Positions 17,520-60,100 of a stretch of 64,000 bases of DNA are shown here, one piece after another. The stretch covers positions 2,170,001-2,234,000 of the forward strand of contig OZ176058.1 of NCBI GenBank assembly GCA_964247055.1, written 5' to 3'. The first letter of the stretch is position 1. The number at the start of each line of letters is the position of its first letter. Source of the stretch: Paragordius varius. Taxonomy: Eukaryota; Animalia; Nematomorpha. The notes beneath the pieces were generated by a model. That model did no database searches. It saw only the letters and a list, made by a program, of their open reading frames with translations, and was not told the DNA's origin. Position numbers and translations under genes: made by a program.

Positions 17520-19599
17520 AATTACAATATAAATTTGCCCTTAAACTATTCAAATTCACCTCGAAAATAAATTATGTGTTTTTGGGTAACTCTCCATTAA
17601 TATAAAATATAAATATTAATTTTTTATTTTTTATTAATTATATTACTTTAAAATAGTTTTTAGTTAATTTTTAAAAGTTGGGGATATATATATATATATA
17701 TATAAATTACAATTAAAATTCACCCTCATTTAAATTCACCCTTAAAATAAATTATGTGTGTTCGGGTAATATAACTCTCCTTTGATAGAAAATATAAATA
17801 TTAATTTTTTATTTTATAATTTATCATATTAATTAATAAACTTTAAAAAAAAGCTCTTTTAGTTGAAATTTATAAAAGTAAGGAATATATATTTATATGA
17901 ATTACAATTTAAATTCACCCTTAAACAATTCAAATCACCCTAAAAATAAATTTGGCTAATATAACTCACCATTAATATAAAATATATATAAATGGCATTA
18001 TTTTTTCAGTATTATATATTAATTTCAAACAAAATTTTATTTTTAAAATATATATAAAAATAAAAGTAATTTTTAATCTTAAAAAATACAGAATTTAAAT
18101 TATTAGTGGGTAAATTTGATATTTCAATGGATAAATTTGAATTTTCAAGAGTGAATTTGAATTGTAATTCCTATATATATATATATGATTATTGAATCTT
18201 TCAGTGTAAAACATTTTAAAATTTTTATAAACATTAATTAACAATTTTTTCCAAAAAATACTTATTTTTGCTTAATCTAATTGTATCTAATTTGTGAAGG
18301 GTAACACAATGTATAATTACCTTAATAAATTGTAACTTATCTTTATATAGAATAATTGCAAATTACTAAAACCACATAAATTTTAATGTTTTTTTATATG
18401 AAATATTTATAAAAAAAGAATTAAATTCTTTTATCCATCAACTCTCATGAATTATTTTAAAATTTATCCTTTCAAGTATATATTTAGTGTACTGCTGAGT
18501 TTAGAAAACACAATTTTTATAATTATAACTATACCATTTACAATTCAAATTCATCCTTGAACAATTCAAATTCACCCTCAAAAAAAATTATATGTTTTTT
18601 AAGATGAAAAATTACCTATATATTTTTTATAATTTTATAAAATAAAATTTGTTTTAAATTAAAATACTGAATTAAACTATGCCATAAAGATATATTTCAT
18701 ATTTATAATGAGTTGTTATATTAGTTCGAAAACACATAATTTGTTTAGGGTGAATTTGAATTGTTCAAGGGTGAATTTTAATTGTTCGAGGGTTAATTTG
18801 AACTGTAAATGGATTTTAAAATCATCTATTTATTTGATAGACAATGACAATATTTATTGATGGGTTTATAAAATCAGCTGTTGAAAATCAGCTGTTTTTC
18901 ATTATATTCATTTTTATTTTTAGGGTCAAATAGCTGTACAGGGGAGTTTATCCGTTCTGTTAGATTCTCTCATATGTTCGCTGGGGCCGCTCATATGTTT
19001 AACTGAAGCATTTCCCGGGCTACGGACCCTGAAACATGTGACGGAGTATGGGAAAGAGGGCGCATATATCATCCCAGATCAGACTTCTCAACTACAGTAA
19101 ATATATGCTATTGAAATATATATATCTTTTATATTTTCATTTGCTTAAAAAAATGTAATTTATAGTCTCTATTTAATTTGTATTTATCCAATTTAATTTT
19201 CATTGTTTATCATTATTTCACCCAATTTAACAATTATTGTTAGAAAATACTAATTCCAAATTTTTTTATTACCATTTAAATATTCATAAAATCAAGGAAG
19301 TTTTGAAAATATATTTGGTTCTTTTTGTTAAAATTAATATTTGTCTTTTAGATTTTTTACCTTTTAATTTTTATTATTTCTAATGTCAATTTATTTAATT
19401 TATTAGTATAAAGCAAGAACAGGTAGATGATGTAGAAATTAAAAAAGAAATGACCTCAGAACAAATGGCGATAGAAAAATCAGCTGATATGGAGAATCTA
19501 ACTCGTGAAATAATATCAGCTGACGCGGCTTACCAAGCTCGGTCGAAACAATATGCCCGAATTTTGGATCACATAGCTTTTATAATGCCGGGCCTTTGA
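1689..19599 (+). CDS. HMGXB4: HMG box-containing protein 4-like, 13 exons, ~470 aa from ATG 1689 (true start may lie upstream)
   Basis: Manual join 1689(exon starts 1672)-1842, 2618-2654, 3170-3219, 6277-6381, 6917-6963, 8417-8605, 11529-11604, 12249-12313, 13546-13651, 14458-14582, 16866-16958, 18924-19096, 19407-19599. All introns are GT-AG and phases chain without a stop (1413 nt). HMG box [52 protein letters not shown] spans 11529-13651. The C-terminal block [57 protein letters not shown] matches the characteristic HMGXB4 C-terminus (recalled vertebrate ..[44 protein letters not shown]). Confidence 0.88.
2142..2407. mobile_element. MITE family A (subterminal 21-bp repeats), degenerate copy in HMGXB4-like intron 1
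   Basis: ttcaaattcactcttaaacaattcaaattcaccc..ataaattatgtgttttcgaactaa..aaggtaaatttgaattgttcaaggg..gtaaatgata. Confidence 0.65.
3560..6200 (+). repeat. Degenerate ~190-bp tandem array (about 12 copies) filling HMGXB4-like intron 3
   Basis: Unit core ttgaataattattgaaattgccaaaaaaacaaaatttgcaaagctataaatatcaagaaggcccccttgaagttgttgaaaaaatattt. Confidence 0.8.
9586..9857. mobile_element. MITE family A copy next to a (TA)n tract
   Basis: CATTTACAATTCAAATTCACCC..GGGTGAATTTGAAGTAAATGG-TA. Confidence 0.72.
10250..11528 (+). repeat. About 12 tandem acceptor-like units (tttta(a)gggtaaaaaa) before the HMG-box exon at 11529
   Basis: Copies near 10257, 10325, 10392, 10573, 10640, 10753, 10875, 10950, 11036, 11138, 11246 and 11323. 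Confidence 0.75.
17085..18812. mobile_element. Cluster of MITE-A left ends and two full copies (about 17899-18170 and 18534-18812) in HMGXB4-like intron 11
   Basis: Repeated aattcacccttgaacaattc left arms, each followed by ttcgggtaatataactc and duplicated flanking sequence. Complete CCATTTAC..GTAAATGG copy at 18534-18812. Confidence 0.65.
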
Positions 19600-25128: not shown

Positions 25129-25485
25129 CCATTTACAGAAATTCACCCTTAAACAATTCAAACTCACCCTTGAACAATTCAAATTCACCTTCGAACAATT
25201 CAAATTCACCCTAAAATAAATTAAGTGTTTTTTAAGATTAAATATTACCTATTTTTTTTTATATTTTTTAAAAAAGAAATTTTGTATGTAATCAAAATAA
25301 TACTTAAAAAATAATAAACTTTGCAATAAAAAATATTTAATTTTAATGATAAGTAATATTAGACCGAAAGTTCATAATTTATTTTAGGGTGAATTTGAAT
25401 TGTTCAAGGGTGAATTTGAATTGTTCCAGGGTGAATTTGAATTGTTCAAGGGTGAATTTGAATTGAAGGGTTGAATTGTAAATGG
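25129..25485. mobile_element. MITE family A, complete copy with TA flanks
   Basis: TA-CCATTTAC..GTAAATGG-TA, with 3-4 copies of the 21-bp unit TTGAACAATTCAAATTCACCC in each arm in inverted orientation. Confidence 0.8.
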
Positions 25486-27029
25486 TATAATATAATATAT
25501 TTATCCTGTTTTACCCATTTATATGCAGATTAAAAAGTATAAGCTTTTTCTAATTCATTTCCCTTTTCTTCACCCATTTTTCTTATTGATTCTTTGATCG
25601 TTTTACGGCGTTTGAATATAATTTCTTTCGGAGACGGCGCATTTCTCTTTCTACCATTTTTTGAAGGTCACTCAAGATACTTTTTAATCTTAGTTTTTAG
25701 TCTTTTATATTATTACAAATAGCCTGCCCTTTGTATAAAAAAAACCCTCCGAAATATATCTTTTAAGGCGATCTGATCGGTTAATTTTTCATTTAAATTG
25801 TTAAAAAGTTCAACCTTAAATAAAAAAAATCTAAAAATTTAATTAGATGGTCTTCTAGTAAAAAGTATTCATAAATAGTGAAGAGATGATCGTAAATTTT
25901 TAATAAGATAGATATTAAAATGTATTTTAATATTCATAATTTTACATTTTTTGTTAAAACGCTTTTTTTCATTGGCAAACTCTGATTTATGCACTCAGGA
26001 TGATTTAAATTTTTAGTTTTACCCTTTTTATATAAAAATTAATATTCCAATTTACGATTTTATTTTTTATATCTCAAAAACATTTTAAAATAAAATTTCA
26101 AAATTAAGTATAAAAGATATAAAAATTTACGATAAAAAACATTTTTACAGCTAAAACGTGAAAACATAAAGACAATTATTTTTTTATAACCATACTTTTC
26201 ATACCTTAGTTTTTCCGATATAGATATTTATACAATTGTACAATACTAATTGTGATACTAATATACTTCTTAGTTTTATACTTTTCAATTTAAATCAGTG
26301 GTTTAGATCTATAAAAATCAAGTCTGTTTTTTTGGAAAAATATATCAGTGATTATTTTAGGTTTTGACTGCATAAAATATTACTGTAAATTCAATCTATA
26401 AGCACAAACTCCCCCTTTCTATTCTCAATTTTTATAGTTATATAGATGGCGTTTCAAATACTTTGCTTCAATATTTTATAAAATTTTTGTTATTTTATTA
26501 TAATAAAAGTTATTAAGACACAAATAAGGAAATAATATAGTATTAAAATGGTATACTTTAAAAAATTTGGTTTTATATTCTAGTGTTGATAAAAAAAATT
26601 TTTGTTTCTATGATTGCAAAACTCGGGCATTCCGTTTTTCTATGTATTATTCTTAAATTTTTTTCCTAAAATATAAATTAAAAATGAATTTTATACCAGA
26701 TTTAGGGATATTTCTTTAACCACCGTATTAAAATATTAGTAATTTAAATTAAATTAAATTTACAGTAAGAAATAACTGTGTACATATTTAAATTTTGTTT
26801 TAGGAATAAAGTTGTAAATTGTTTACACGCTCAATTATATTATATATTATATAATTGGGATTAAATAGTTTATATATGAAAATATTGAGTTATATCATTG
26901 TTTTTTTTAAAAAAAAATATTTTAGTTTTTTTCATTTTATATCTGTTTAACTTTAATAATTTTTAATGTAAAATGGGTCAGGGGTAAGAATTAAAGAAAG
27001 ACATATATATATAATACATACTATTTTTA

Positions 27030-28164: not shown

Positions 28165-28277
28165 ATATACATCAATTCTTCATTTTAAAATTGTAACTAA
28201 ATAGATTATATGGGAAAAATTAAGGTTTTAAAAAGTATGATTGTTCTTTTTGTCCATATAATTTTGATTTTTACTCG
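27998..28277. mobile_element. MITE family B copy with an internal (TA)n tract
   Basis: TA-CAGTAAAAACTGAAATTATAC.. left arm and a degenerate right arm ..tgtccatataattttgatttttactcg. Confidence 0.6.
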
Positions 28278-32566: not shown

Positions 32567-33134
32567 ATGGCTAAAAAAGTCGTCAAAAAAATTCGCACGC
32601 CTAAAAAGGCATCCAAAAAAACTAGCTCAATACAAATCATTGACACTTCCTCCGATACGCAAAGAGGTGTAATATATGTTGGACATTTACCTTTTGGATT
32701 TTTTGAACAAGAAATTCGCTCATACTTTGATCAATTTGGAAAAGTTACGAAAGTTCGCGTGGCCAGGAGTATTAAGGTATTTATTTAAAAATAATTGATA
32801 GTCCGGACGAGATAAAGGTTATGCTTTTGTAGAATTTGAAGATGAACAAGTTGCTAAAGTCGCAGCTGAAACCATGAATAATTATATTATGTTTGACAAA
32901 ATTTTGAAGTGTCACCTAATGCCAACCGATAAAATTCACCCTAAATTATTTGTCGGACATAATAGATCATTTAAGGTCAGACCTAAATACCTAAACATTA
33001 AAAATGCGCATAATAAACCCAAAACTATTGCACAAATTGAGAAAAATAAATTGCGATCATTGCAGAAACTCAAAAAAACTAACAAATCCCTATCCAATCT
33101 TGGTTTTGCATATGATTTTGAAATAATCCAATAA
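32567..33134 (+). CDS. NIFK: NIFK/Nop15-like nucleolar RRM protein, 180 aa, one 25-nt intron
   Basis: join(32567-32776,32802-33134). Intron gtatttatttaaaaataattgatag joins ..RVARSIK to [40 protein letters not shown] in frame. RNP2 [14 protein letters not shown] and RNP1 KGYAFVEF with the NIFK/Nop15-type continuation. Confidence 0.9.
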
Positions 33135-36712: not shown

Positions 36713-37683
36713 CTAAAATTTGGTTAATTCTTGAATTTCCCGTACCACCCTTTTCCATTCGCTATCAATGTCTTCTTTTTTATCGAATATATCATTATTT
36801 AAAGTAAAAGTTTGACTTGTCGTATACGTTGTTTTTTGAGGTGAATTCATATTTTTTGTAAACTTTTCTGGTTGTGTTACAAAAGTTGATGATATTGAAT
36901 CTATACGAGACGCTACGGAAAAAGGTGAAGTGTTTTTGGCGCTGTGCACGTGATCGCACGTCACGAGGTCTGAATCGAAATCATTTGTGGTTTGATTTGT
37001 TAGATTATGGTTTAAAGGTGTAGAAGTTTTTATTGGTTGTGAAGGAGTATTATCTTGTACGAAATATTTGCTTTTGTTTTTACTTGAACGCAATAAATGT
37101 GGTGATATCATAGGGAGAGGAGATTTAACCATAATATTTTGGGGTGTGTGGTTGTTTTGTTCATGGACTTTCAGTATCTTTATGAAAATAAAATGTAATT
37201 TAAATCAAATCATACAGACAAATTGTTTAAACCAAAAGACAATATTTTTTGAAAAAGCAACCATATTTTTTAAATCAAACTTATCGTTTTGGGTTGAGAA
37301 ACCAAACATATAGATACAAAAGTAAGTATCGCTATTTTTTTTAAAAAAAATTGTCTTCTTTTGATTTTATGTTCTGTATAAATAAAGCCTACCGTTTTTT
37401 GCAAACTTTAAATATATTTTAAAAATAAAAATTAATAATAATTTATATAAAACTTTAATATTTTGCAATAGAGAGGAAAATATATTTATTTATTTTATAG
37501 CCAGGGTTGAGTTTTATCCACTTAAAAATTTTAACCGTCTGCTCATATAAAATGAGATTAAAAAGAGAAGCATAAACAAAACAATAAATTGTTGAAAAGA
37601 GAGATTTACTTTTGTTAAATTTAGAATAAATTTATCATTTGGGTTTTGAAAATTGGAATGAGTTGTAAATTGGCAATGCTCAG

Positions 37684-37736
<53 letters not shown>

Positions 37737-40700
37737 TGAAATTGCCTTATGGAAAAATAAGGTTTAAAAAGTAGGGTTGTCTTTTCAAAATAAAATAGCT
37801 TTTAGTTTTAACGTTTTGCCTATATTTCAATTTTTACTGTATAAGCACACCACAGTCTCAATCATGATGTCTTTATAACTAGTCAGACTCTAATTTTACA
37901 CACTTAAATATTCGAAAATGTTTTTAACCAATTTAAAAAAAACCATAATGAAATTAATCTGTTCTCAAAAAATAAATCCGGATAAACTTTTTCTATTATA
38001 AACCCAGTCGAATAAAAATTCAAAAAAACTAACAAATTCTTATTCTAGAATCAAAAAATATAAAATTAAAAAATTTAACAATTAGATTAAACCCAAAAGA
38101 AATAAAAAAATTTCTTATAAAGTCAAACCAAATTAGGCCCTCCTTGACCGCCACCATTATGAGAGAAGGGTGATCGATATTTTGATGCCGAAAGATTGAT
38201 ATCATAACTCCTTCGACTGGCTCGCCAAATTTCAGGTTCTTGGAAAAAATTATTAGTAATAGTTATCGGAGGAAGTTTATTTTTATGAATCCTGGCTGAA
38301 ATTGAATAAAAATCATTTTTATAGTTATTAAAATTGGGGTGTTGGTATTGTTGTTGATTAAATTGTTGAGATTGCCTCATCAAACAATCAAAACTTCCTC
38401 GTCGCGGGTAATTAACGTATCGTAAGCTATTGACTTCATTTTTTATAATAAGGTTGTTGTTATTTGGATTGCCATACAATCGACTAAAAAAGATATAAAA
38501 ATAATATTGATAATCAGAGAGAAGTATACAGTAGACCCCCTCAAAATGGATTTATTTTCAAATTTAAATTATTCCATGCTAATATAAGTGACTAATTTTC
38601 ATGTCAAATTTCTTTAAAGTTAACCGCAAAGCTACTAAAATGTTTAATCAAAAAGTATTTACAAACTTTTTATTAACTATAAAAGTGATTACAGCAATGT
38701 GGGCTATTATTAAACATTTCGGAATCTTAATTGGCTAAAAAATTGAAAAATAGCAAATACATATCAAGACATATTTTAATTAACACTTGGATACAACACA
38801 TTAATTTTTGTTCTTCGATTCAAATTGGGGTAATTAGATACCCCAGGCTTGTTATAAAAATACTTCAAAAAAAGTGGAAGGAATTGAAACCTTGGCAAAA
38901 CTTTACGCTTATACATTAATGAACCGAAATATAATAAATTCATTCAAAAATACTCTTATTCAGAAGTAAAACTCAAAGGTAAAAAACAATCAACATGGCA
39001 TGTGTGCGTAAGCTAAATGCAAAAATTATGCAAAATATACATACCTATTTATCTGCTTTTATCAATGTTAAATGTGATTTAAATAAACTGTTGTTAAATA
39101 AAAATGGCGTTTAAGTAGTTTGGTACGGAACGTTTATTTTTTCCAAAACATTTATTTAGATATTTTGGCCTATTTATACAATTTTAATTAGGGTAGAAAA
39201 CATAAATTTTTAAAAAAAACGTTTCTTTCAGTATAGGTTGAAAATATCACTTTGAATATTGTCTGGGGTATTTAGATAACCCAATATAATCGAAGTTTTT
39301 AATATCAAACGGCCACTAATAGCTCTCCTTATTGTGTATTTCTATATTTCCCGAAATTATATAAAATTTAGTTTATGAACAAATATATTGATGGAAAATT
39401 AAAATTTTAAAAATTTTTGTTAGTTTAATAATTAAATTGTTAAATTTCCAGTATATTAAAATTTCAGAACATGCGCTCTGAATTAGTATTTAAATATTAA
39501 AACTTTTTGTTTATAAAACAAATCAAAATTCTTAAAACTTAATTTTTTTAATAAAATAATCGATGGTTTTGGGTTGCGAAACAATGAAAAGAGATATTAA
39601 TTGGTACACTCAATTTAGACAATTTCATAACTGTAATCTTTTAGCATTTATAGATAGTTTAGAAAGGTATGATTGTCTTTTGAAAAAATTGTAAATTTCA
39701 TGTTATGTCCCAAATTTTAATATTTATTTAATATACAAGATTGAGATTAATAAAGAATTAATATTAAAAAAGTTTGTTATTATAATAATAAATTTAAAAA
39801 ATGTGCAAAACAAGATAAATACTGAAAAATGTGCAAAACATGATAAAAAATTAAAATGATTGACATTGAATAATTCGTTTCATAGAAAGCTTGAGAAATT
39901 AATTAAGCAAAATCATTGGTTTTAAATAAATTTTTAGTTATTAAATAATATATAAAAAAAATATTAAATGCGAAAAATTTTGCCTAGAACTTAAAAACGC
40001 TTTAAAATAGCACAAATTACGTCGAAACTATTATAAAGAGAAAGTGTAGAAACACAAACTAAATCATCTGGGAAATGAAGGTTTGAAAAAGCATGATTGT
40101 TTCTTTTTTAGATTTTGTCTGTATATTATCAAGTTTTACTGTATTTATTAAAAATACCTTAGTCTTTGCAAAAAAATATAAGATTTTAAAGTTATAAGCT
40201 AACTTCATTTGTTGCCCTTTTTCATGTAATAATCTGAATCTAGCCAAATTCCAAATTTTTAAGTTTTGTTTTGCAAGTACAAAAAACGATTTTTACCAAA
40301 ACCAAAAGTTAAAAACTCTTTTCTAAATTAATAGTTAAATTCAAACTTTCAGGGCTAACCTTATTTGTTGCTTATTCTATGTATAATCATCCGAATCGAA
40401 CCAAAAATATTTTTAAATATCTTATCTGTTATACAGAGAGTGCAAAAATTGAAATCTACAAAAAGTTTTTTTCAATTTAAAATTTTTAATATCCAAGTTA
40501 AGTTTGTGCCATTTTCAAGTTAAATGTAAAATAACCAGACATCTTTGCAACAACTAACCAAAATTCAAATTTAATAAATAGTTTTATTTCAAAGGCTTTT
40601 CAATTTTTAACAACAATAAAGCTTTAAATGTTAATCTTTTTGCTATTTTTTGCAAAATTATGTTTTTAGCTTCAAGATTAAAAGTTTAACATTAAAAATC

Positions 40701-43219
40701 TAACCTCATTTGTTGCGTTAACTCTTGTGCCATGGTTATTTCTCGGTCTTCAGGCGTCGTGGGCGGTTGTTTTAACAGCTGATCTGGTAGGGCCCAACCG
40801 CCCGTTTTCCAAGCAACGGGGTCTCCTTTAGCTAAATCCTCTAAGGCTTCTAACAGAGATTTTCGAACTTTTGTTTTAGCTCCTTTTTTATTCCTGCGTT
40901 TTCGGTTACTGTGACTTTTGGAATATGAGCTAGATATCAATAGTACACAGTAAAATATGTAAAATTATACGCAGACGAATTAAAAATATAAAAACATTTA
41001 TTTTTTTCAAAAGATAACTAGCCATATACTTTTTCGAACGCAAAATTCTTAATTTTCGCTGTATAACACATTGTAATTCATTTAATAACTATTGTTAAAT
41101 ATACAATTTACAATTAGAATTTACCCTCAAACAATTGCAATTTACCCTCGAACAATTCAAATTCACCCCCGAACAATTCAAATTCACCTACGAACAATTT
41201 AAATTCACCCTAAAAATAAATTATGTGTTTTCGCGCTAATATAACTGATTATTAATATGTATTACATCTGTATATTTTAGTTTTTTATTTTGTCCGTATT
41301 ATTTTAATTTTGAACAAATTATTTCATTTGTTAAAATGGGAAAATATAGGTAATTGTTAATTTTAAAACACAAAATTTATTTTTATGGTGGACTCGAATT
41401 GTTCGAGGGTCTGAATTCGAGTTGTTCAAGGGTGGATTTAAATGGTAAATCGTGGTAATTAATAACAAGACATTAATATATACTACATTAATAATTAAAT
41501 TGTTAAATAAAATTAATATATTATTGATTGTGTGTTAACCAATTTACATAACTATATCATACACCTCCATTATATAATAATGAGAGTTGTTCATAAAAAT
41601 CAAAAACCATTTACGATTCGAAATCACCCTCAAATAAATTAAATGTTTATTAAGATTAAAAATTACCTATATTTAAAAAAAAATTTTGTTTTAAATTAAA
41701 ATAATACTGGAAAATAATTAACATGCCATAAAGATATATTTTATATTATTATTATGTTATATTAGTAAAACACATAATTTATTTTTAGGGTAAATTTAAA
41801 CTGTAAATGGTATATATAAACGAGTCATTTGTAAAAAACATCTGTCTTTATGTTTTTACGTATTTTTTGTGCATATAATTTTAATTTTTACTGTATGTTA
41901 TTTGCATCATTTGTTGTACTATTATAATCGTCAATCAAAATTTCCGAATTTAAACTTTGATGTCCTCTGTTTTTTAGCTTAGTAGCGCAATTCGAATTTC
42001 TAGAATTTTCTGTTAAGCCACCCCCAAGAGTAGTGGAGGATACAGTTCCTTGGGCTGAGGTAATACTTTCTTCGCACATGGAAAAAGTGGAATTTATGGT
42101 ATCGCCTTTATTTGAATTGTCGCAATTATTATTAGTAATTGAATTGGAATATGAACAATAGTAAGTGCTATCATTACCATTGCAATTGGAATTCGTATTG
42201 GAATCATTTTTGATTAAAGAGGTTATATTTAAGTTTTTGGATAAATTAGATGTATGTACAGCCGTGTTTTGTGGTGGTGAATATAAATATTCTTTAGGGG
42301 TGGTTTTAGTAGATCGGCTCTGCCCAAAAGGCAAAGAAGGCGTTAAAGTTCCCGTCAATTTCGGCGAACTAATAAGATATGTTGAGTTTGCTTGGTTATT
42401 TTCAAGCGAATGTTTAGCTGAATTCTGGCTAATGAGCTGACTAGGTTTCAACAAAATCTCTTGTTGATTATTTTCAGTTGTAACTGTCCTATTAGTTTTT
42501 GAATGTGGCCTTAAACTATTTCTACTATTTCGACTATTTCGATCTCTACTGTTACGCTTCAAGTTAACAGCTGATGAAGGGAGTGGAGATGGCGCATATT
42601 TCTCCACCATATCTTGATCGGGCGATGAAAGTTCACCCAAATAACCCTGATTGCAGGCACCCTGGGTACAATTGTTAAATTTTGTGGTTTGGGTTATTTT
42701 TTGCCCTCTTTTTGACTGGTGATGATTTTGAACAAAATTCTTAGAATCCTGAGAACTCTGAGAATTGATTTCAAAATTTGGTCGCCTAAAACTATTATTT
42801 CTAGCAGAAGATGGTAACCTTGGTATAATGGAAACAGTTAAGGGTACACCATTATTATTGTTGCTTTTTGCATCATGATGAGAATATTCTAAATGTTTAT
42901 TTTTATAACAACGAGCTCGACATCGATAAATAACCCAAAATATAAGGGCACCTAAAACAAAAAGTATAATGAAACATGTCCCAACTACCGTAATCCAAAA
43001 TAGTGTTAATACATATCTTTCCCTTTCATCTATCGATTGATTATTACCCAAAATAAAATTTTCTTTCAACATGAAATTTCCTTGAGTAGTATTATTAGTA
43101 GTTGAAATTTTAACTGTAGAATTTAACGGAGCAGCAGGGTTGGTTTTTTTATTGAGTTTGGTAGAAATTATACGTAAGACAAGATCTTGGAATGATAATC
43201 GGTTTTTTTGTTGAGTCAT
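36713..43219 (-). CDS. Orphan single-pass membrane protein, 4 exons, ~790 aa, long Ser/Asn/Thr-rich cytoplasmic tail
   Basis: complement join 43219-41892, 40929-40705, 38483-38129, 37177-36713. Links four ORF-track ORFs through GT-AG introns of phases 2, 2 and 0 with no stop (2373 nt). One hydrophobic segment VLTLFWITVVGTCFIILFVLGALIFWVIY followed by RCRARCYKNK. Ends ..VVREIQELTKF*. No recognised domain. Confidence 0.7.
38784..39298. mobile_element. piggyBac-type MITE in intron 2 of the membrane-protein gene
   Basis: TTAA|CACTTGGATACAACAC..TTCGATTCAAATTGGGGTAATTAGATACCCCAG and ..CTGGGGTATTTAGATAACCCAATATAATCGAAG..TTAA. Confidence 0.68.
40948..41893. mobile_element. MITE-B carrying two nested MITE-A copies; occupies nearly all of intron 1 of the membrane-protein gene
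   Basis: CAGTAAAATATGTAAAATTATACGCAGACG at 40948 and ..GCATATAATTTTAATTTTTACTG at 41893. MITE-A copies at about 41085-41448 and 41607-41810. Confidence 0.75.
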
Positions 43220-43574
43220 GCGGGGGTTATTAAAAATTTACATTTTCTGATCATACATTATTTGACTATCTTTTTGATGCTGAAAATTTTGTTGAGTATA
43301 CATCTTTCTTGAATAATTTTATAAAGAATATTCATATTTCTTCTGCATTTACGAATTTTTGAACATTTTGAATTCATTTCTATGTATTAACAAGAAAAAT
43401 TTATAATTAAATATTATAGGTGCAAAAAAAGGTGCAAAAAGATTTACAAATACGTGATATAAAATATATAAACTTTATTTTAATATTTTAGAAAATACTA
43501 TAACCTGATAAAATTTATTTCAAAAAGTAATAGGCAAAAAAATGACCTAAAGCCATTTTACTTTATATTTTTTA

Positions 43575-55900: not shown

Positions 55901-57065
55901 AGATTTTAGATTCTTGCGAAATTTTGGGTTTTTAATTAAAAATTAATTTATAATTATATAATTTTATAAAAAATTATTTAAATTTTATATATTATCATAA
56001 AAAGTATAAATTGTGTCATAATTAATTTGGATTAGATTAGTTTTGAAGTTTTGGCCACAAGGTATCTAATATTTATTCGATAATCTTTTTTACCACAAGA
56101 TATAGCGCATCTTCTAAGTTAAATATTTTATGATCTTTTTCAAATTTAATAAATAATTAAATATGAAAAAAATTATCATTTTTAAGTATTTCAATATTTA
56201 TTGCAGCCAAGAATTGATTCTGGCAAAATTTTTTTTAATTGTACATTTTTATTTGTTAAAAAGAGCCCAATGGTATTAACCATGTCATATCAAAAAATAA
56301 AAGAAACGATTATAATATGACAATTTTTTTCACTTTATTAATGTTTAAAAGTCCCCCAAAACGTTTCTTAAATTCTTGAACCTTATTTAGTCTACCCCCT
56401 TTTCTTACCACATGGTAGATGGCTATTTATGCCTTCAAAATATTTCTACAGCCCCCAGCCCTGCGTGAAATTATACCATTTACAGTTCAAATTTACCCTT
56501 AAACAATTCAAATTCACCCTCGAACAATTCAAATTCACCCTAAAAATAAATTATGTGTTTTTTAAACATTTTAAAAATTACCTTTATTTTTTTATATTTT
56601 TAAAAAATGAAATATTGTTTAAAATTAATATAATACTGAAAAACTAATAAACTCTATGTCGTAAAAATATATTTCATATTAATGATGAGTTATATTAGTG
56701 CCCAAAAACACATAAATTATTTTCAGGGTGAATTTGAATTGTTCGAGGGTGAATTTGAACCGAATTTTCAGCAATTTGATGTTTAAAACGAGCAAAAAAA
56801 GTTTTTTTTATTAAATCGATTGTAGGAGAGAAAGTTTTACAGTTTTATTAAAACTCAAATTAAAATGAATGCGCACTCTTTTTTTTGGATGCGGGGGGCG
56901 GTATTTGGCCAAGTCATTTGTGTAGGAAATACTCCTGATAGACATATTTTTTTAAAAATTTTATTAAAAAAAATGTTGGGATCTCACTTGTGAAGCAGTT
57001 TTAACTATAAATTCAAAGTTTGATTTTATATTATTATTATTTCTGAGATAAATTTAACAATTATA

Positions 57066-57110
<45 letters not shown>

Positions 57111-60100
57111 AAAACTGAAATTTACGAACAAAACGTAAAAATATAAAGACAAATATTTTTTTCTAAAAGACCACCATACTTTTTTAATTTAGATTTATAT
57201 CAATATAACTCATTATTTTAAATGGCAAAGTGTGAAATGGAGATATATATCACTAACACAATCAATTCTATATTTTACAATTGCAACTGATTAACTTTTT
57301 AAAAAATATGGTTATCTTTGTTTACCACAAGGGGGAGAATTTTTTCCAAATTAAACTTTTTTTCCATATCTAGTTTGTTTGTTTTAATTAGAAAAATATA
57401 AAATTTTAATATTAATTGCATTGATCTCAATTGTATAAAAGTTATAAATTTTTGTATTATTTCTTTCCCTTGACGTTCATTTACTCGACTTTAAATAACT
57501 AATTAATAATTTTTGAAGAATATTGTGTGGGTTTTTACCAGTAGTATATCATCAAATAAAGAAGACATTCTAATTTTTCATTAAATTACATGATTAGTTA
57601 TTATGAAATTTTATATTAAAATAAGTTATATTACGTAAACACATAATAATTTATTTTTAGGATTAAATTGTTTAAGGGTGAGTTTGAAATGTTCAAGGGG
57701 GAATTTAAATTGTTCAAGGGTGGTTTGAAATATCTAAAGGGTGAATTTGAATTGTTTAAGGGTGAATTTGAATTGTTCAAGGGTGAATTTGAATTGTTCA
57801 AGGGTGAATTTGAATTGTTTGAGGGTGATTTTTAATTGTTATTTGAATTGTAAATGGTATAACAATAAGTCAGTTATAAATATATATATATATATATATG
57901 TAAATTACCAATTTTATATTGAAAAAAAAACATATTTGTATCATTATTATATACCTTTAAATTTTATTCCCATAATATTTTAATTTCTATTTTTGACTGT
58001 AAAAGCATTACCAATATACATCCTCCCTATTTCATAAATGATTCACTTATAGAGTATATATGTGAAAAACCAATTTTATATTGAAAAAAAAAATGTTTGT
58101 CTTTATATATCTTTCCAATTTTATTGTTTGAGGGTGAATTTGAATTGTAAATGGTATATCAATACATCAGTTCTATATATATATATATACCAATTTTATC
58201 TTGAAAAAAATGTTTGTCTTTATTATATATCTTAAAATTTTATTCTATATTTTCCAATTTTAATTACTATTTTTGACTGTAAAAGCATTACCAATATACA
58301 TCCTCCCTATTTCATAAATGATTCACTTATAGAGTATATATATATAAACCAATTTTATATTGGAAAAAAATGTTTTTATATACCTTTAAATTTTATTCTA
58401 TATTTATTATGTGAGGGTGATTTGAATCTATGATATAACAATACATCAGTTGTATATATGTAAATACCAGTTTTATATTGAAAAAAAAAACGTTTTTCTT
58501 TATATATTTTCCAATTTTATTCTATATTTTAATTGTTAAATGGTATAGCAATAAGTCAGTTCTATATATATATGTAACAACCAATTTTTTTTTTGAAAAA
58601 AATGTTTGTCTTTATATATCTATAATTTTAATTACTATGTAGGATCCTGACATATCAAGGCTACCCAAATACGTATGTTACATTTGCACCTTTCCACACA
58701 TCCTTAACCCGTGGGAGAAGGGACTTGATTTCATGCATCATCATTATGAACAAAAACAGAATTCCGCCGTCGCAGCTGATAAAAACTCAGCTGATCGCGA
58801 TGCCACCACGACGATCCACGAGGAAAGCGGAACAGGTGGAGGGGGAAATAAAATTACAGTTCTGTCTACAACGAATGGTGTTTATCTTACGGGTATAGCG
58901 GAAGTTGAAGCTACACCCCTACTAGCGGGAGGACCAGAAACAGCTGACGGAAGCGAAAATGTCATAAGGTTTGCACGCATTCACTCAAACATATGTTTTT
59001 CAACAGCTGTAACTTGATAATTATGTACGCTTGATTTTGGGTTTTTTGTGGTAGTTTGAGGAGAATTTTAGAATTCTTCTGATTTTTATGTACGTCATTT
59101 ACTGTTTAAAAAAGGCCAGTGTCAATGTTTTCTGTCTTTTCTAATTTAATACAGTTAGATTTAGGATTTGCTCCAGTTATTAGTATATACCCCCTAAAAA
59201 CAGCTGATAAAATGCGATTATAACATTTGTTTTGCAACAGATGTGTTTTCTCGGCGCATTTTTTTGATTAGAAAGTATAAATAGATTTTGGTTGGGTTTG
59301 ATTCAATTTAATTTAGTTGCATTAAAAATTAATTATATGGTTAAAAATGTTTTGATATATCATTAAAACTTTAAATTCACCCTTGAACAATTCAAGTTTA
59401 CCCTGAATATCAATTATTTATTTTTTAGCTACTAGAAATCCTCTTTAATATGAAATATATCTTTATGGCATAGTTAATATTTTTCAGTATTTTTATTTAA
59501 ACAAAATTTCATTTTTTGATAAAGTATAAAAAATATAAGTAATTATTTTACCTTAAAAAACACATAATTTATTTTAGGATGATTTTGAATCGTTCAAGGG
59601 TGAATTTGAATTGTTCAAGGATGAATTTGAAATTGTAAATGATATTTTATTTATTTAAGGATATGAATTTGAATTGTTGAAGGGTTAATTTGAATTGTTC
59701 AAGGGTGAATTTGAATTGTTCAAGGTTATCAATTTGAATTGTCAAATGGTATTTTATTTTTTTATTATTTCTAGCTTGGGGGAATTTGAAGTGTTTAAGG
59801 GTGAATTTGAATTGTTCAAGAATGGAATTTGAATTGTTCAAGGATATCAATTTAAATTGTTTAAGGGGGGTGAATTTGAATTGTTCAAGGGGGAATTTCA
59901 ATTGTTTAAGGTAAGGGTTAATTTAAATTGTTTAAGCGTGAATTTTAATTGTTTAAGGGTGAATATGAGTTTAAGGGTGAATATAAATGTTCGAGGGGGA
60001 ACTCCAATTGTTTAAGAGTGAGTTTGAATTGTTCAAGGGTGAATTTGAATTGTTTAAGGGTAAATTTTAATCGTTCAAGGGTGAATTTGAATTGTTCAAG

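Follow-up and report, generated by a model that had tools for sequence, protein, structure and literature searches.

How can a gene persist when a transposon has brought a stop codon into one of its coding exons? The question is raised by a gene on the minus strand of a 64,000-nt stretch of the genome of Paragordius varius (Nematomorpha; assembly GCA_964247055.1, contig OZ176058.1, positions 2,170,001-2,234,000), hereafter the window, to which all counts of transposon termini, transposon copies and adjacent reading frames given below refer. The first exon of this gene, which appears to encode a membrane protein, runs directly into a miniature inverted-repeat transposable element (MITE) of a family designated here MITE-B. 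An earlier reading of the letters of this DNA (the sequence-only reading) had proposed that the element was turned into an intron, its end supplying the splice donor, in the manner of introner-type elements. The explanation that we favour, and regard as rather probable, is that MITE-B inserted in a coding exon and is now removed by the spliceosome as a new intron; the removal at the RNA level is deduced here from genomic sequence.

The open reading frame (ORF) of 443 codons that begins the gene (43219..41888, minus strand) ends ..GCA AAT AAC ATA|CAG TAA, where CAG (41893-41891) is the first triplet of the terminal inverted repeat (TIR) of a MITE-B copy. The terminus at the insertion reads CAGTAAAAATT..., and the TIR beginning at 41893 is CAGTAAAAATTAAAATTATATGCAC. 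The start of the TIR coincides with a codon boundary of exon 1, and the stop codon of the ORF comes from MITE-B. The copy lies at 40948..41893 on the minus strand and measures 946 nt including nested copies, with a core of ~370 nt (TIRs CAGTAAAAATTAAAATTATATGCA and CAGTAAAATATGTAAAATTATACGCA); its far TIR ends ..TTTTACTG at 40948. Both TIRs begin CAGT, and at the tips 23 of 26 positions are the same in both, and over 75 nt the identity is ~70%. The upstream copy of the TA target-site duplication (41894..41895) provides the second and third bases of the ATA codon. On the far side (40944..40947), the downstream TA (40945-40944) is parted from the TIR by an extra TG (40947-40946), which is present in no other MITE-B copy inspected. 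The far junction (40833-41168) is spanned by contigs identical to the window in DNA runs X1 and X5, and the insertion is therefore not an artefact of the assembly.

MITE-B has many copies in the window, which were mapped by scans for the TIR pattern, a permissive blastn comparison of the region with the window having yielded AT-rich noise. A 25-mer of the TIR found five matches at ≤3 mismatches, against none in 100 shuffles, and a looser scan detected ~25 MITE-B termini in the 64 kb, nearly all with TA before them. Since these termini pair into short copies of 240-540 nt that hold no ORF and are almost all TA-flanked, the element is assigned on its sequence features to a Tc1/mariner-type MITE family (TA target, CAGT termini). 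No matching autonomous element with a DDE/D transposase was noted in the 64-kb window, where no dedicated test for one was made. The core of the inserted copy is only 63-82% identical to the other copies in the window, having lost 20-35% identity, which indicates that the insertion is old. A 73-codon open stretch upstream of another MITE-B terminus, at 28276, was considered as well and dropped, as one frame translated there was not open.

Two copies of a different family, MITE-A, are nested in the element, both on the minus strand. The first (41607..41810; termini CCATTTAC...GTAAATGG) resembles 18539-18781 and 56524-56742, whereas the second (41102..41455), which is TA-flanked, resembles 25153-25504 and 56469-56759 and has a right arm made of an array of 21-nt units (41110-41214). 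Arrays of such units (ACAATTCAAATTCACCCYCGA), seen at 41110-41214, 57741-57983 and 59647-59952, constitute MITE arms of variable length and give rise, in several parts of the window, to spurious ORFs that contain LEQFKFT repeats.

If the element is removed from the message, which splice sites could be used? We enumerated every GT or GC donor in the final 260 nt of exon 1 in combination with nearby AG acceptors. There are seven GT donors in the final 230 nt of the exon, and only three donors are in frame with the AG at 40930: the GT inside the TIR (ACA|GTAAAAAT, 41891), a GT at 42077 and a GC at 41978. The latter two would remove a conserved block, ILIDDY, so that by this enumeration 41891/40930 is the sole in-frame canonical GT-AG pair that preserves it. 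The proposed intron (40930..41891, minus strand; GT 41891-41890, AG 40931-40930) is 962 nt long and in phase 2, and its removal reads ..NDANNI-H-SYSKSH.. in frame. When the MITE is instead excised together with the TG and one TA (40944-41893), the sequence reads ..AAC ATA CTA TTG ATA TCT AGC TCA.., that is ..ANNI-LLISS-SYSK.., an open sequence that shares the frame of exon 2. The 14 nt at 40930..40943 (CTATTGATATCTAG), which read in the LLISS frame after excision of the MITE, are thus former exon sequence that would now close the intron on its 3' side and supply the acceptor AG. This AG lies 18 nt past the far TIR and is the first to follow an 88-nt AG-free, T-rich tract, which consists of the far TIR; the AG before it is at 41018. 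Except for the final 18 nt, the proposed intron is composed of transposon copies throughout, with a read depth of 10^3-10^6 versus ~400 in the exons. We infer from these features a junction 41892^40929 with the GT of the TIR as donor.

The sequence-only reading had described these features of the sequence correctly in every detail. The end of the ORF exactly in the MITE-B terminus, the phase-2 GT and AG on the two sides of the element, the open frame left by removal of 40944-41893, the cost of four residues (a net loss of 12 nt, LLISS being replaced by H), the two further MITEs inside the element and the irregular TG-TA flank, which it had given as a caveat, were each found as it had stated. 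The frame that it followed onwards chains, as it had said, through the further exons (2-4).

We propose the following course of events. A non-autonomous MITE-B would have inserted at a TA inside a continuous coding exon, in a poorly conserved linker between two conserved blocks, and would have brought an immediate stop (CAG TAA). The gene would have survived because the spliceosome could remove the element as an intron, using as donor the GT within the first four bases of the TIR (..ATA CA|GTAAAAAT) and as acceptor the first AG to follow the T-rich far TIR, which has no AG of its own; this acceptor lies 18 nt inside the old exon (..TGATATCTAG|C). Base-pairing between the two TIRs probably juxtaposes both splice sites. 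In the resulting message, 14 nt of the old exon would be lost and 2 nt of the transposon kept, which accounts for the net change of -12 nt, and the two MITE-A copies would have landed later inside the new intron.

The element could also leave the message by a route that does not involve the spliceosome. Exonic copies of Tc1, Tc3 and Tc4 in C. elegans and a mariner reporter in human cells are excised by SOS splicing (Zhao et al. 2025, PMC12779559), a process that depends on AKAP17A, CAAP1 and RTCB (PMC12779559). Applied to this gene, it would mean an excision triggered by pairing of the inverted repeats, dependent on RTCB and independent of the spliceosome, with heterogeneous junctions near the TIR ends that are mostly non-GU-AG and only in part in frame. 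The MITE belongs to the substrate class of SOS splicing (exonic, Tc1/mariner-type), and the predicted fold of the intron RNA pairs both ends over ~25 bp in the minimum free energy structure as well as in the centroid (-243.5 kcal/mol, z -11). Nematomorphs are close to nematodes, and exonic Tc1 is excised to 90-100% with rescue only in poorly conserved regions (PMC12779559), as at this site. However, the site offers a canonical GT-AG pair that is in frame and has a long AG-free tract, so that the ordinary spliceosome suffices, the TIRs have decayed to the level given above and the two nested MITEs add competing hairpins. Moreover, SOS splicing is called imprecise, and alleles relying on it tend to be purged (PMC12779559). 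We consider it unlikely that SOS splicing is what removes the MITE from this message; it could have provided the first rescue, before the spliceosomal route took over.

Both routes presuppose that the sequence beyond the MITE is still part of a gene. Exon by exon homologue searches, the exons being joined only for frame testing, led to one protein, P0001, of 841 aa, from Gordionus sp. m RMFG-2023 (Nematomorpha, Parachordodidae), encoded at locus L001 of GCA_954871325.2. Exon 1 (41892..43219, minus strand, as are the other exons), which has its ATG at 43219, a transmembrane helix at ~aa 70-100 and, in the proposed model, its last base at 41892, is colinear with aa 15-444 of P0001 (E 8e-14), the alignment comprising the N-terminus, the transmembrane helix and the block ILIDDY (ILDDFY in Gordionus). 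Exon 2 (40705..40929; donor AG|GTTAGA) carries a basic stretch followed by the motif KSLLEALEDLAKGD..ALP..LLKQPPTTP and is 57% identical to aa 476-526, where the shared motif is KSLLEALEDLAKGD..ALP..LLxQPPTTP. Exon 3 (38129..38483; acceptor TTTTTTAG|T, candidate donor TTG|GTTTGA) fits exon 2 in phase. The last exon, exon 4 (36713..37177; acceptor CATAAAG|ATA, phase 0), ends ..DIDSEWKRVVREIQELTKF and a stop codon, and its ORF 37132..36713 aligns to aa 731-840 of P0001 (E 3e-08) with the motif DIDxEWxRVVREIQEL. Splice phases chain across exons 1-4. Because exons 1, 2 and 4 align colinearly to a single Gordionus protein, the four exons are, on this homology, one gene, predicted to encode a mostly disordered single-pass membrane protein.

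Other relatives were sought as follows. An exhaustive HMMER search with exon 2 alone gave P0001 as the one real relative; a word-index protein search found no match for exon 1 and, with P0001 as query, returned P0001 alone, which leaves Gordionus as the single available outgroup. A Pfam scan of exons 1-3 gave nothing above threshold, and the ESM Atlas, queried with P0001, gave uncharacterised arthropod clusters only (0.92, 168 shared features) and a disordered model (predicted local distance difference test score, pLDDT, 0.39), from which no function could be assigned.

Evidence that the downstream exons have remained under selection comes from a second form of the gene. DNA run X1 contains two forms over 38050-43350, which are 4-5% diverged and differ in word depth (~155 for the window haplotype versus ~230-270), and which may be alleles, sequences of pooled individuals or the products of a recent duplication. 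The differences between them were taken from the tabulated differences and indels of this run, not from contig sequence. Among the differences listed, 9 of 14 are synonymous in exon 1, all 5 in exon 2 and 6 of 7 in exon 3, and the coding indels are multiples of three. Four of the five changes in exon 2 lie upstream of its sole ATG, which argues that this exon is translated as a continuation from upstream. The contig of the second form can be aligned across the far end of the MITE, where its only deletions, at 40940, 40942 and 40948, are small, and it retains TGATATCTAG, so that the second form appears to share the insertion. Mostly synonymous differences past the stop codon, together with a shared insertion, indicate that the downstream exons have been constrained since the insertion occurred, which in turn requires that the message be freed of the MITE. 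Within 42146-42392 the two forms also differ by 15 gap letters, again a multiple of three, and exon 3 of the second form has a 6-nt in-frame deletion at 38264. No contig with an empty site was present in the runs examined. Two further runs, X5 and X6, which carry the labels of other organisms, contain the same locus at low depth in contigs identical to the window and therefore do not represent independent species.

These data bear on the reading that the gene is broken, being truncated at residue 444 or a decaying duplicate, with exons 2-4 as untranslated relics. Such a reading is suggested by the stop codon directly inside the MITE and by the absence of the gene from small assemblies of possible RNA with the same species label. 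One of these possible RNA runs, X7, contributes a single contig of 1313 nt that matches the window only at 40822-40864 (43 nt, 88%); its flanks are GC-richer and read ..RKSLLEALEDLAKGDISAMSGYKLP, and it encodes a different, more Gordionus-like homologue of the KSLLEALEDLAKGD motif, which might be a functional paralogue. This match supports exon 2 as coding sequence and gives no information on the junction. The contig represents either an expressed paralogue or a species label that covers more than one species. Against a broken gene, neutrality predicts that most of the 18 differences in exons 2 and 3 should be non-synonymous, whereas of the 12 that are listed 11 are synonymous, and the indel keeps the frame. 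Open frames, conserved motifs and splice sites of compatible phase are all still present in exons 2-4, although the insertion is old enough to have taken up two nested MITEs. We judge a broken gene to be quite unlikely.

Whether a relative has the intron can be assessed with the Gordionus gene, in which P0001 is encoded in three blocks (aa 1-401, 402-764 and 765-841). In tblastn, aa 400-764 form one uninterrupted stretch (L001 7595-8689), and the homologue of the exon 1|exon 2 junction (aa 445-475) falls inside it. On this alignment Gordionus, the single outgroup, has no intron at the homologous site; the sequence-only reading had named the orthologue beforehand as the place to look for an intron that would overturn its proposal. 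The introns of the window gene are at ~P0001 aa 450, 540 and 725 and those of Gordionus at aa 401|402 and 764|765 (L001 6001-9169 compared). As none of these five positions coincide, intron turnover must be fast in this gene, and this points to a fast turnover in nematomorph genes more widely. No TIRs were found in the Gordionus introns, nor any MITE-B TIR in the 15-kb Gordionus locus, and according to the depth table the other two introns of the window gene end in single-copy DNA and not in transposon termini.

That the MITE merely landed in a pre-existing intron or micro-intron, as might be suggested by a real 25-nt micro-intron in this genome (32777-32801) and by the MITEs that fill other introns of the gene, is very improbable: once the MITE is excised, the interval from the conserved end of exon 1 to the AG contains no GT, the closest donors further upstream, at 41919 and 41955, are out of phase with the acceptor, the residual sequence is open and in frame and Gordionus has no intron there, so that a micro-intron invaded by the MITE was rejected on the lack of a GT and on phase.

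Removal of MITE-B as a new spliceosomal intron has in turn several points against it. The donor is off-consensus, with CA at -2/-1 and AA at +5/+6, and in the predicted fold it lies buried within the stem of the TIRs; other donors are equally weak (GTTAGA, GTTTGA and GTATTT, and GTTATT in Gordionus). The sense strand of the intron has five AATAAA and three ATTAAA motifs. The two frame coincidences taken alone would occur by chance in ~7% of cases (our estimate, 1/3 x 0.63 x 1/3). Among the listed runs that hold the stretch, none is on record as RNA. In addition, the MITE of the second form is deduced from tabulated indels, and this form may be a paralogue instead of an allele. Finally, with one outgroup and a fast turnover of introns, an intron loss in Gordionus is a formal possibility. 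The proposal that the MITE was turned into an intron is supported in part: the Gordionus comparison, the signs of selection, the transposon make-up of the intron and the sole in-frame GT-AG pair speak for it, whereas use of the TIR donor and removal by the spliceosome are inferred.

Two other observations concern intron ends in the window. A second MITE-B copy lies in the same orientation at ~37190-37839 (minus strand), inside intron 3 of the membrane-protein gene, with TA|CAGTAAAAATTGAAATATAGG at 37839; its degenerate far end precedes the acceptor of exon 4, CATAAAG| (37178), by only ~15 nt, which matches the geometry with which the proposed MITE intron ends. The 25-nt micro-intron at 32777-32801 (plus strand; GT..AG, GTATTTATTTAAAAATAATTGATAG) joins two ORFs in phase 0 in a gene similar to NIFK (32567-33134), and its removal restores the core of an RRM (..RSIK|..); its acceptor, TTGATAG, resembles the proposed acceptor TGATATCTAG.

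Exonic transposons removed from RNA, and introners, are already known, and the present gene is a probable added case. The closest system is the exonic Tc1 of C. elegans, whose removal from pre-mRNA goes back to Rushforth & Anderson 1996, as cited in PMC12779559. The two have in common the superfamily (TA target, CAGT termini), an insertion in a coding exon that brings stop codons, removal, proposed in the present case, at or near the inverted repeats and a small resulting indel, for which only a weakly conserved region of the protein leaves room. However, the Tc1 insertions are recent, being alleles of the laboratory or of particular strains, and their junctions are heterogeneous and for the most part not GU-AG, whereas here an old and decayed MITE, apparently present in two diverged haplotypes and known from sequence alone, has a clean in-frame GT-AG option. 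In maize, Ds and dSpm are spliced from exons (Wessler et al. 1987, in the account given by PMC12779559); as far as that account goes, they resemble the present case as exonic DNA transposons that use donors in their terminus and cryptic host acceptors and change few codons, and differ from it as plant hAT and CACTA elements found in mutant alleles rather than in a fixed gene structure.

Introners are MITE-like elements that create introns in Micromonas, Aureococcus, dinoflagellates and others (PMC9860276, PMC11282704, PMC12130899); the survey of Gozashti found them in two animal groups only, and some of their families gain or lose a small number of codons (PMC9860276). Like them, MITE-B is a non-autonomous DNA transposon with TIRs and a target-site duplication that would contribute one splice site of its own and take the other from the host, and the intron is absent from the gene of a relative. 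Unlike MITE-B, introner families consist of many near-identical introns in unrelated genes; only one of the ~25 MITE-B termini in the window abuts a long ORF, and the acceptor would be a chance AG 18 nt into the exon and not the target-site duplication. By our derivation, an insertion of MITE-B at TAG would add 1 nt, which indicates that the element is not built to be neutral; the actual case has a net change of -12 nt. The likeness to introners that the sequence-only reading had drawn is therefore to be taken with caution, in view of the single such terminus in the window and of a message that would not be restored exactly; the MITE-B case has the appearance of an opportunistic rescue, not of a specialised introner. 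MITE-derived non-canonical introns have also been described in the tunicate Fritillaria borealis, according to a passage of the review PMC11282704. As summarised in that passage, the likeness lies in an animal host, in introns derived from MITEs and in TIR pairing that joins the intron ends; the Fritillaria introns have non-canonical ends that need an adapted spliceosome, whereas a canonical GT-AG pair is available here.

The origin of new spliceosomal introns in animals is still argued; for algae, fungi and protists there is good documentation of introns made by transposons. In this gene the footprint of such an event is still readable, in the form of a target-site duplication, a donor within the TIR and an in-frame remnant of the old exon, with a relative that has no intron at the site, and the age of the insertion shows that the gene has persisted. 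It would be a natural counterpart to the laboratory Tc1 alleles behind the discovery of SOS splicing, whose authors ask if such rescue protects genes over evolutionary time (PMC12779559). The interest of the case would rise sharply if the pattern were genome-wide or if SOS splicing were involved. Tentatively, and with more doubt than conviction, we raise the possibility that MITE-B and its sister families form a working introner system in Nematomorpha, with dozens of recent and lineage-specific introns throughout the genome starting at a CA|GTAAAA TIR of Tc1/mariner type, and that SOS splicing might carry the early generations of such insertions. If SOS splicing acted early, before canonical sites were in use, SOS splicing and intron gain would be linked; and if the introner system is real, horsehair worms would be one more animal lineage, and a non-marine one, in which transposons drive the gain of introns.

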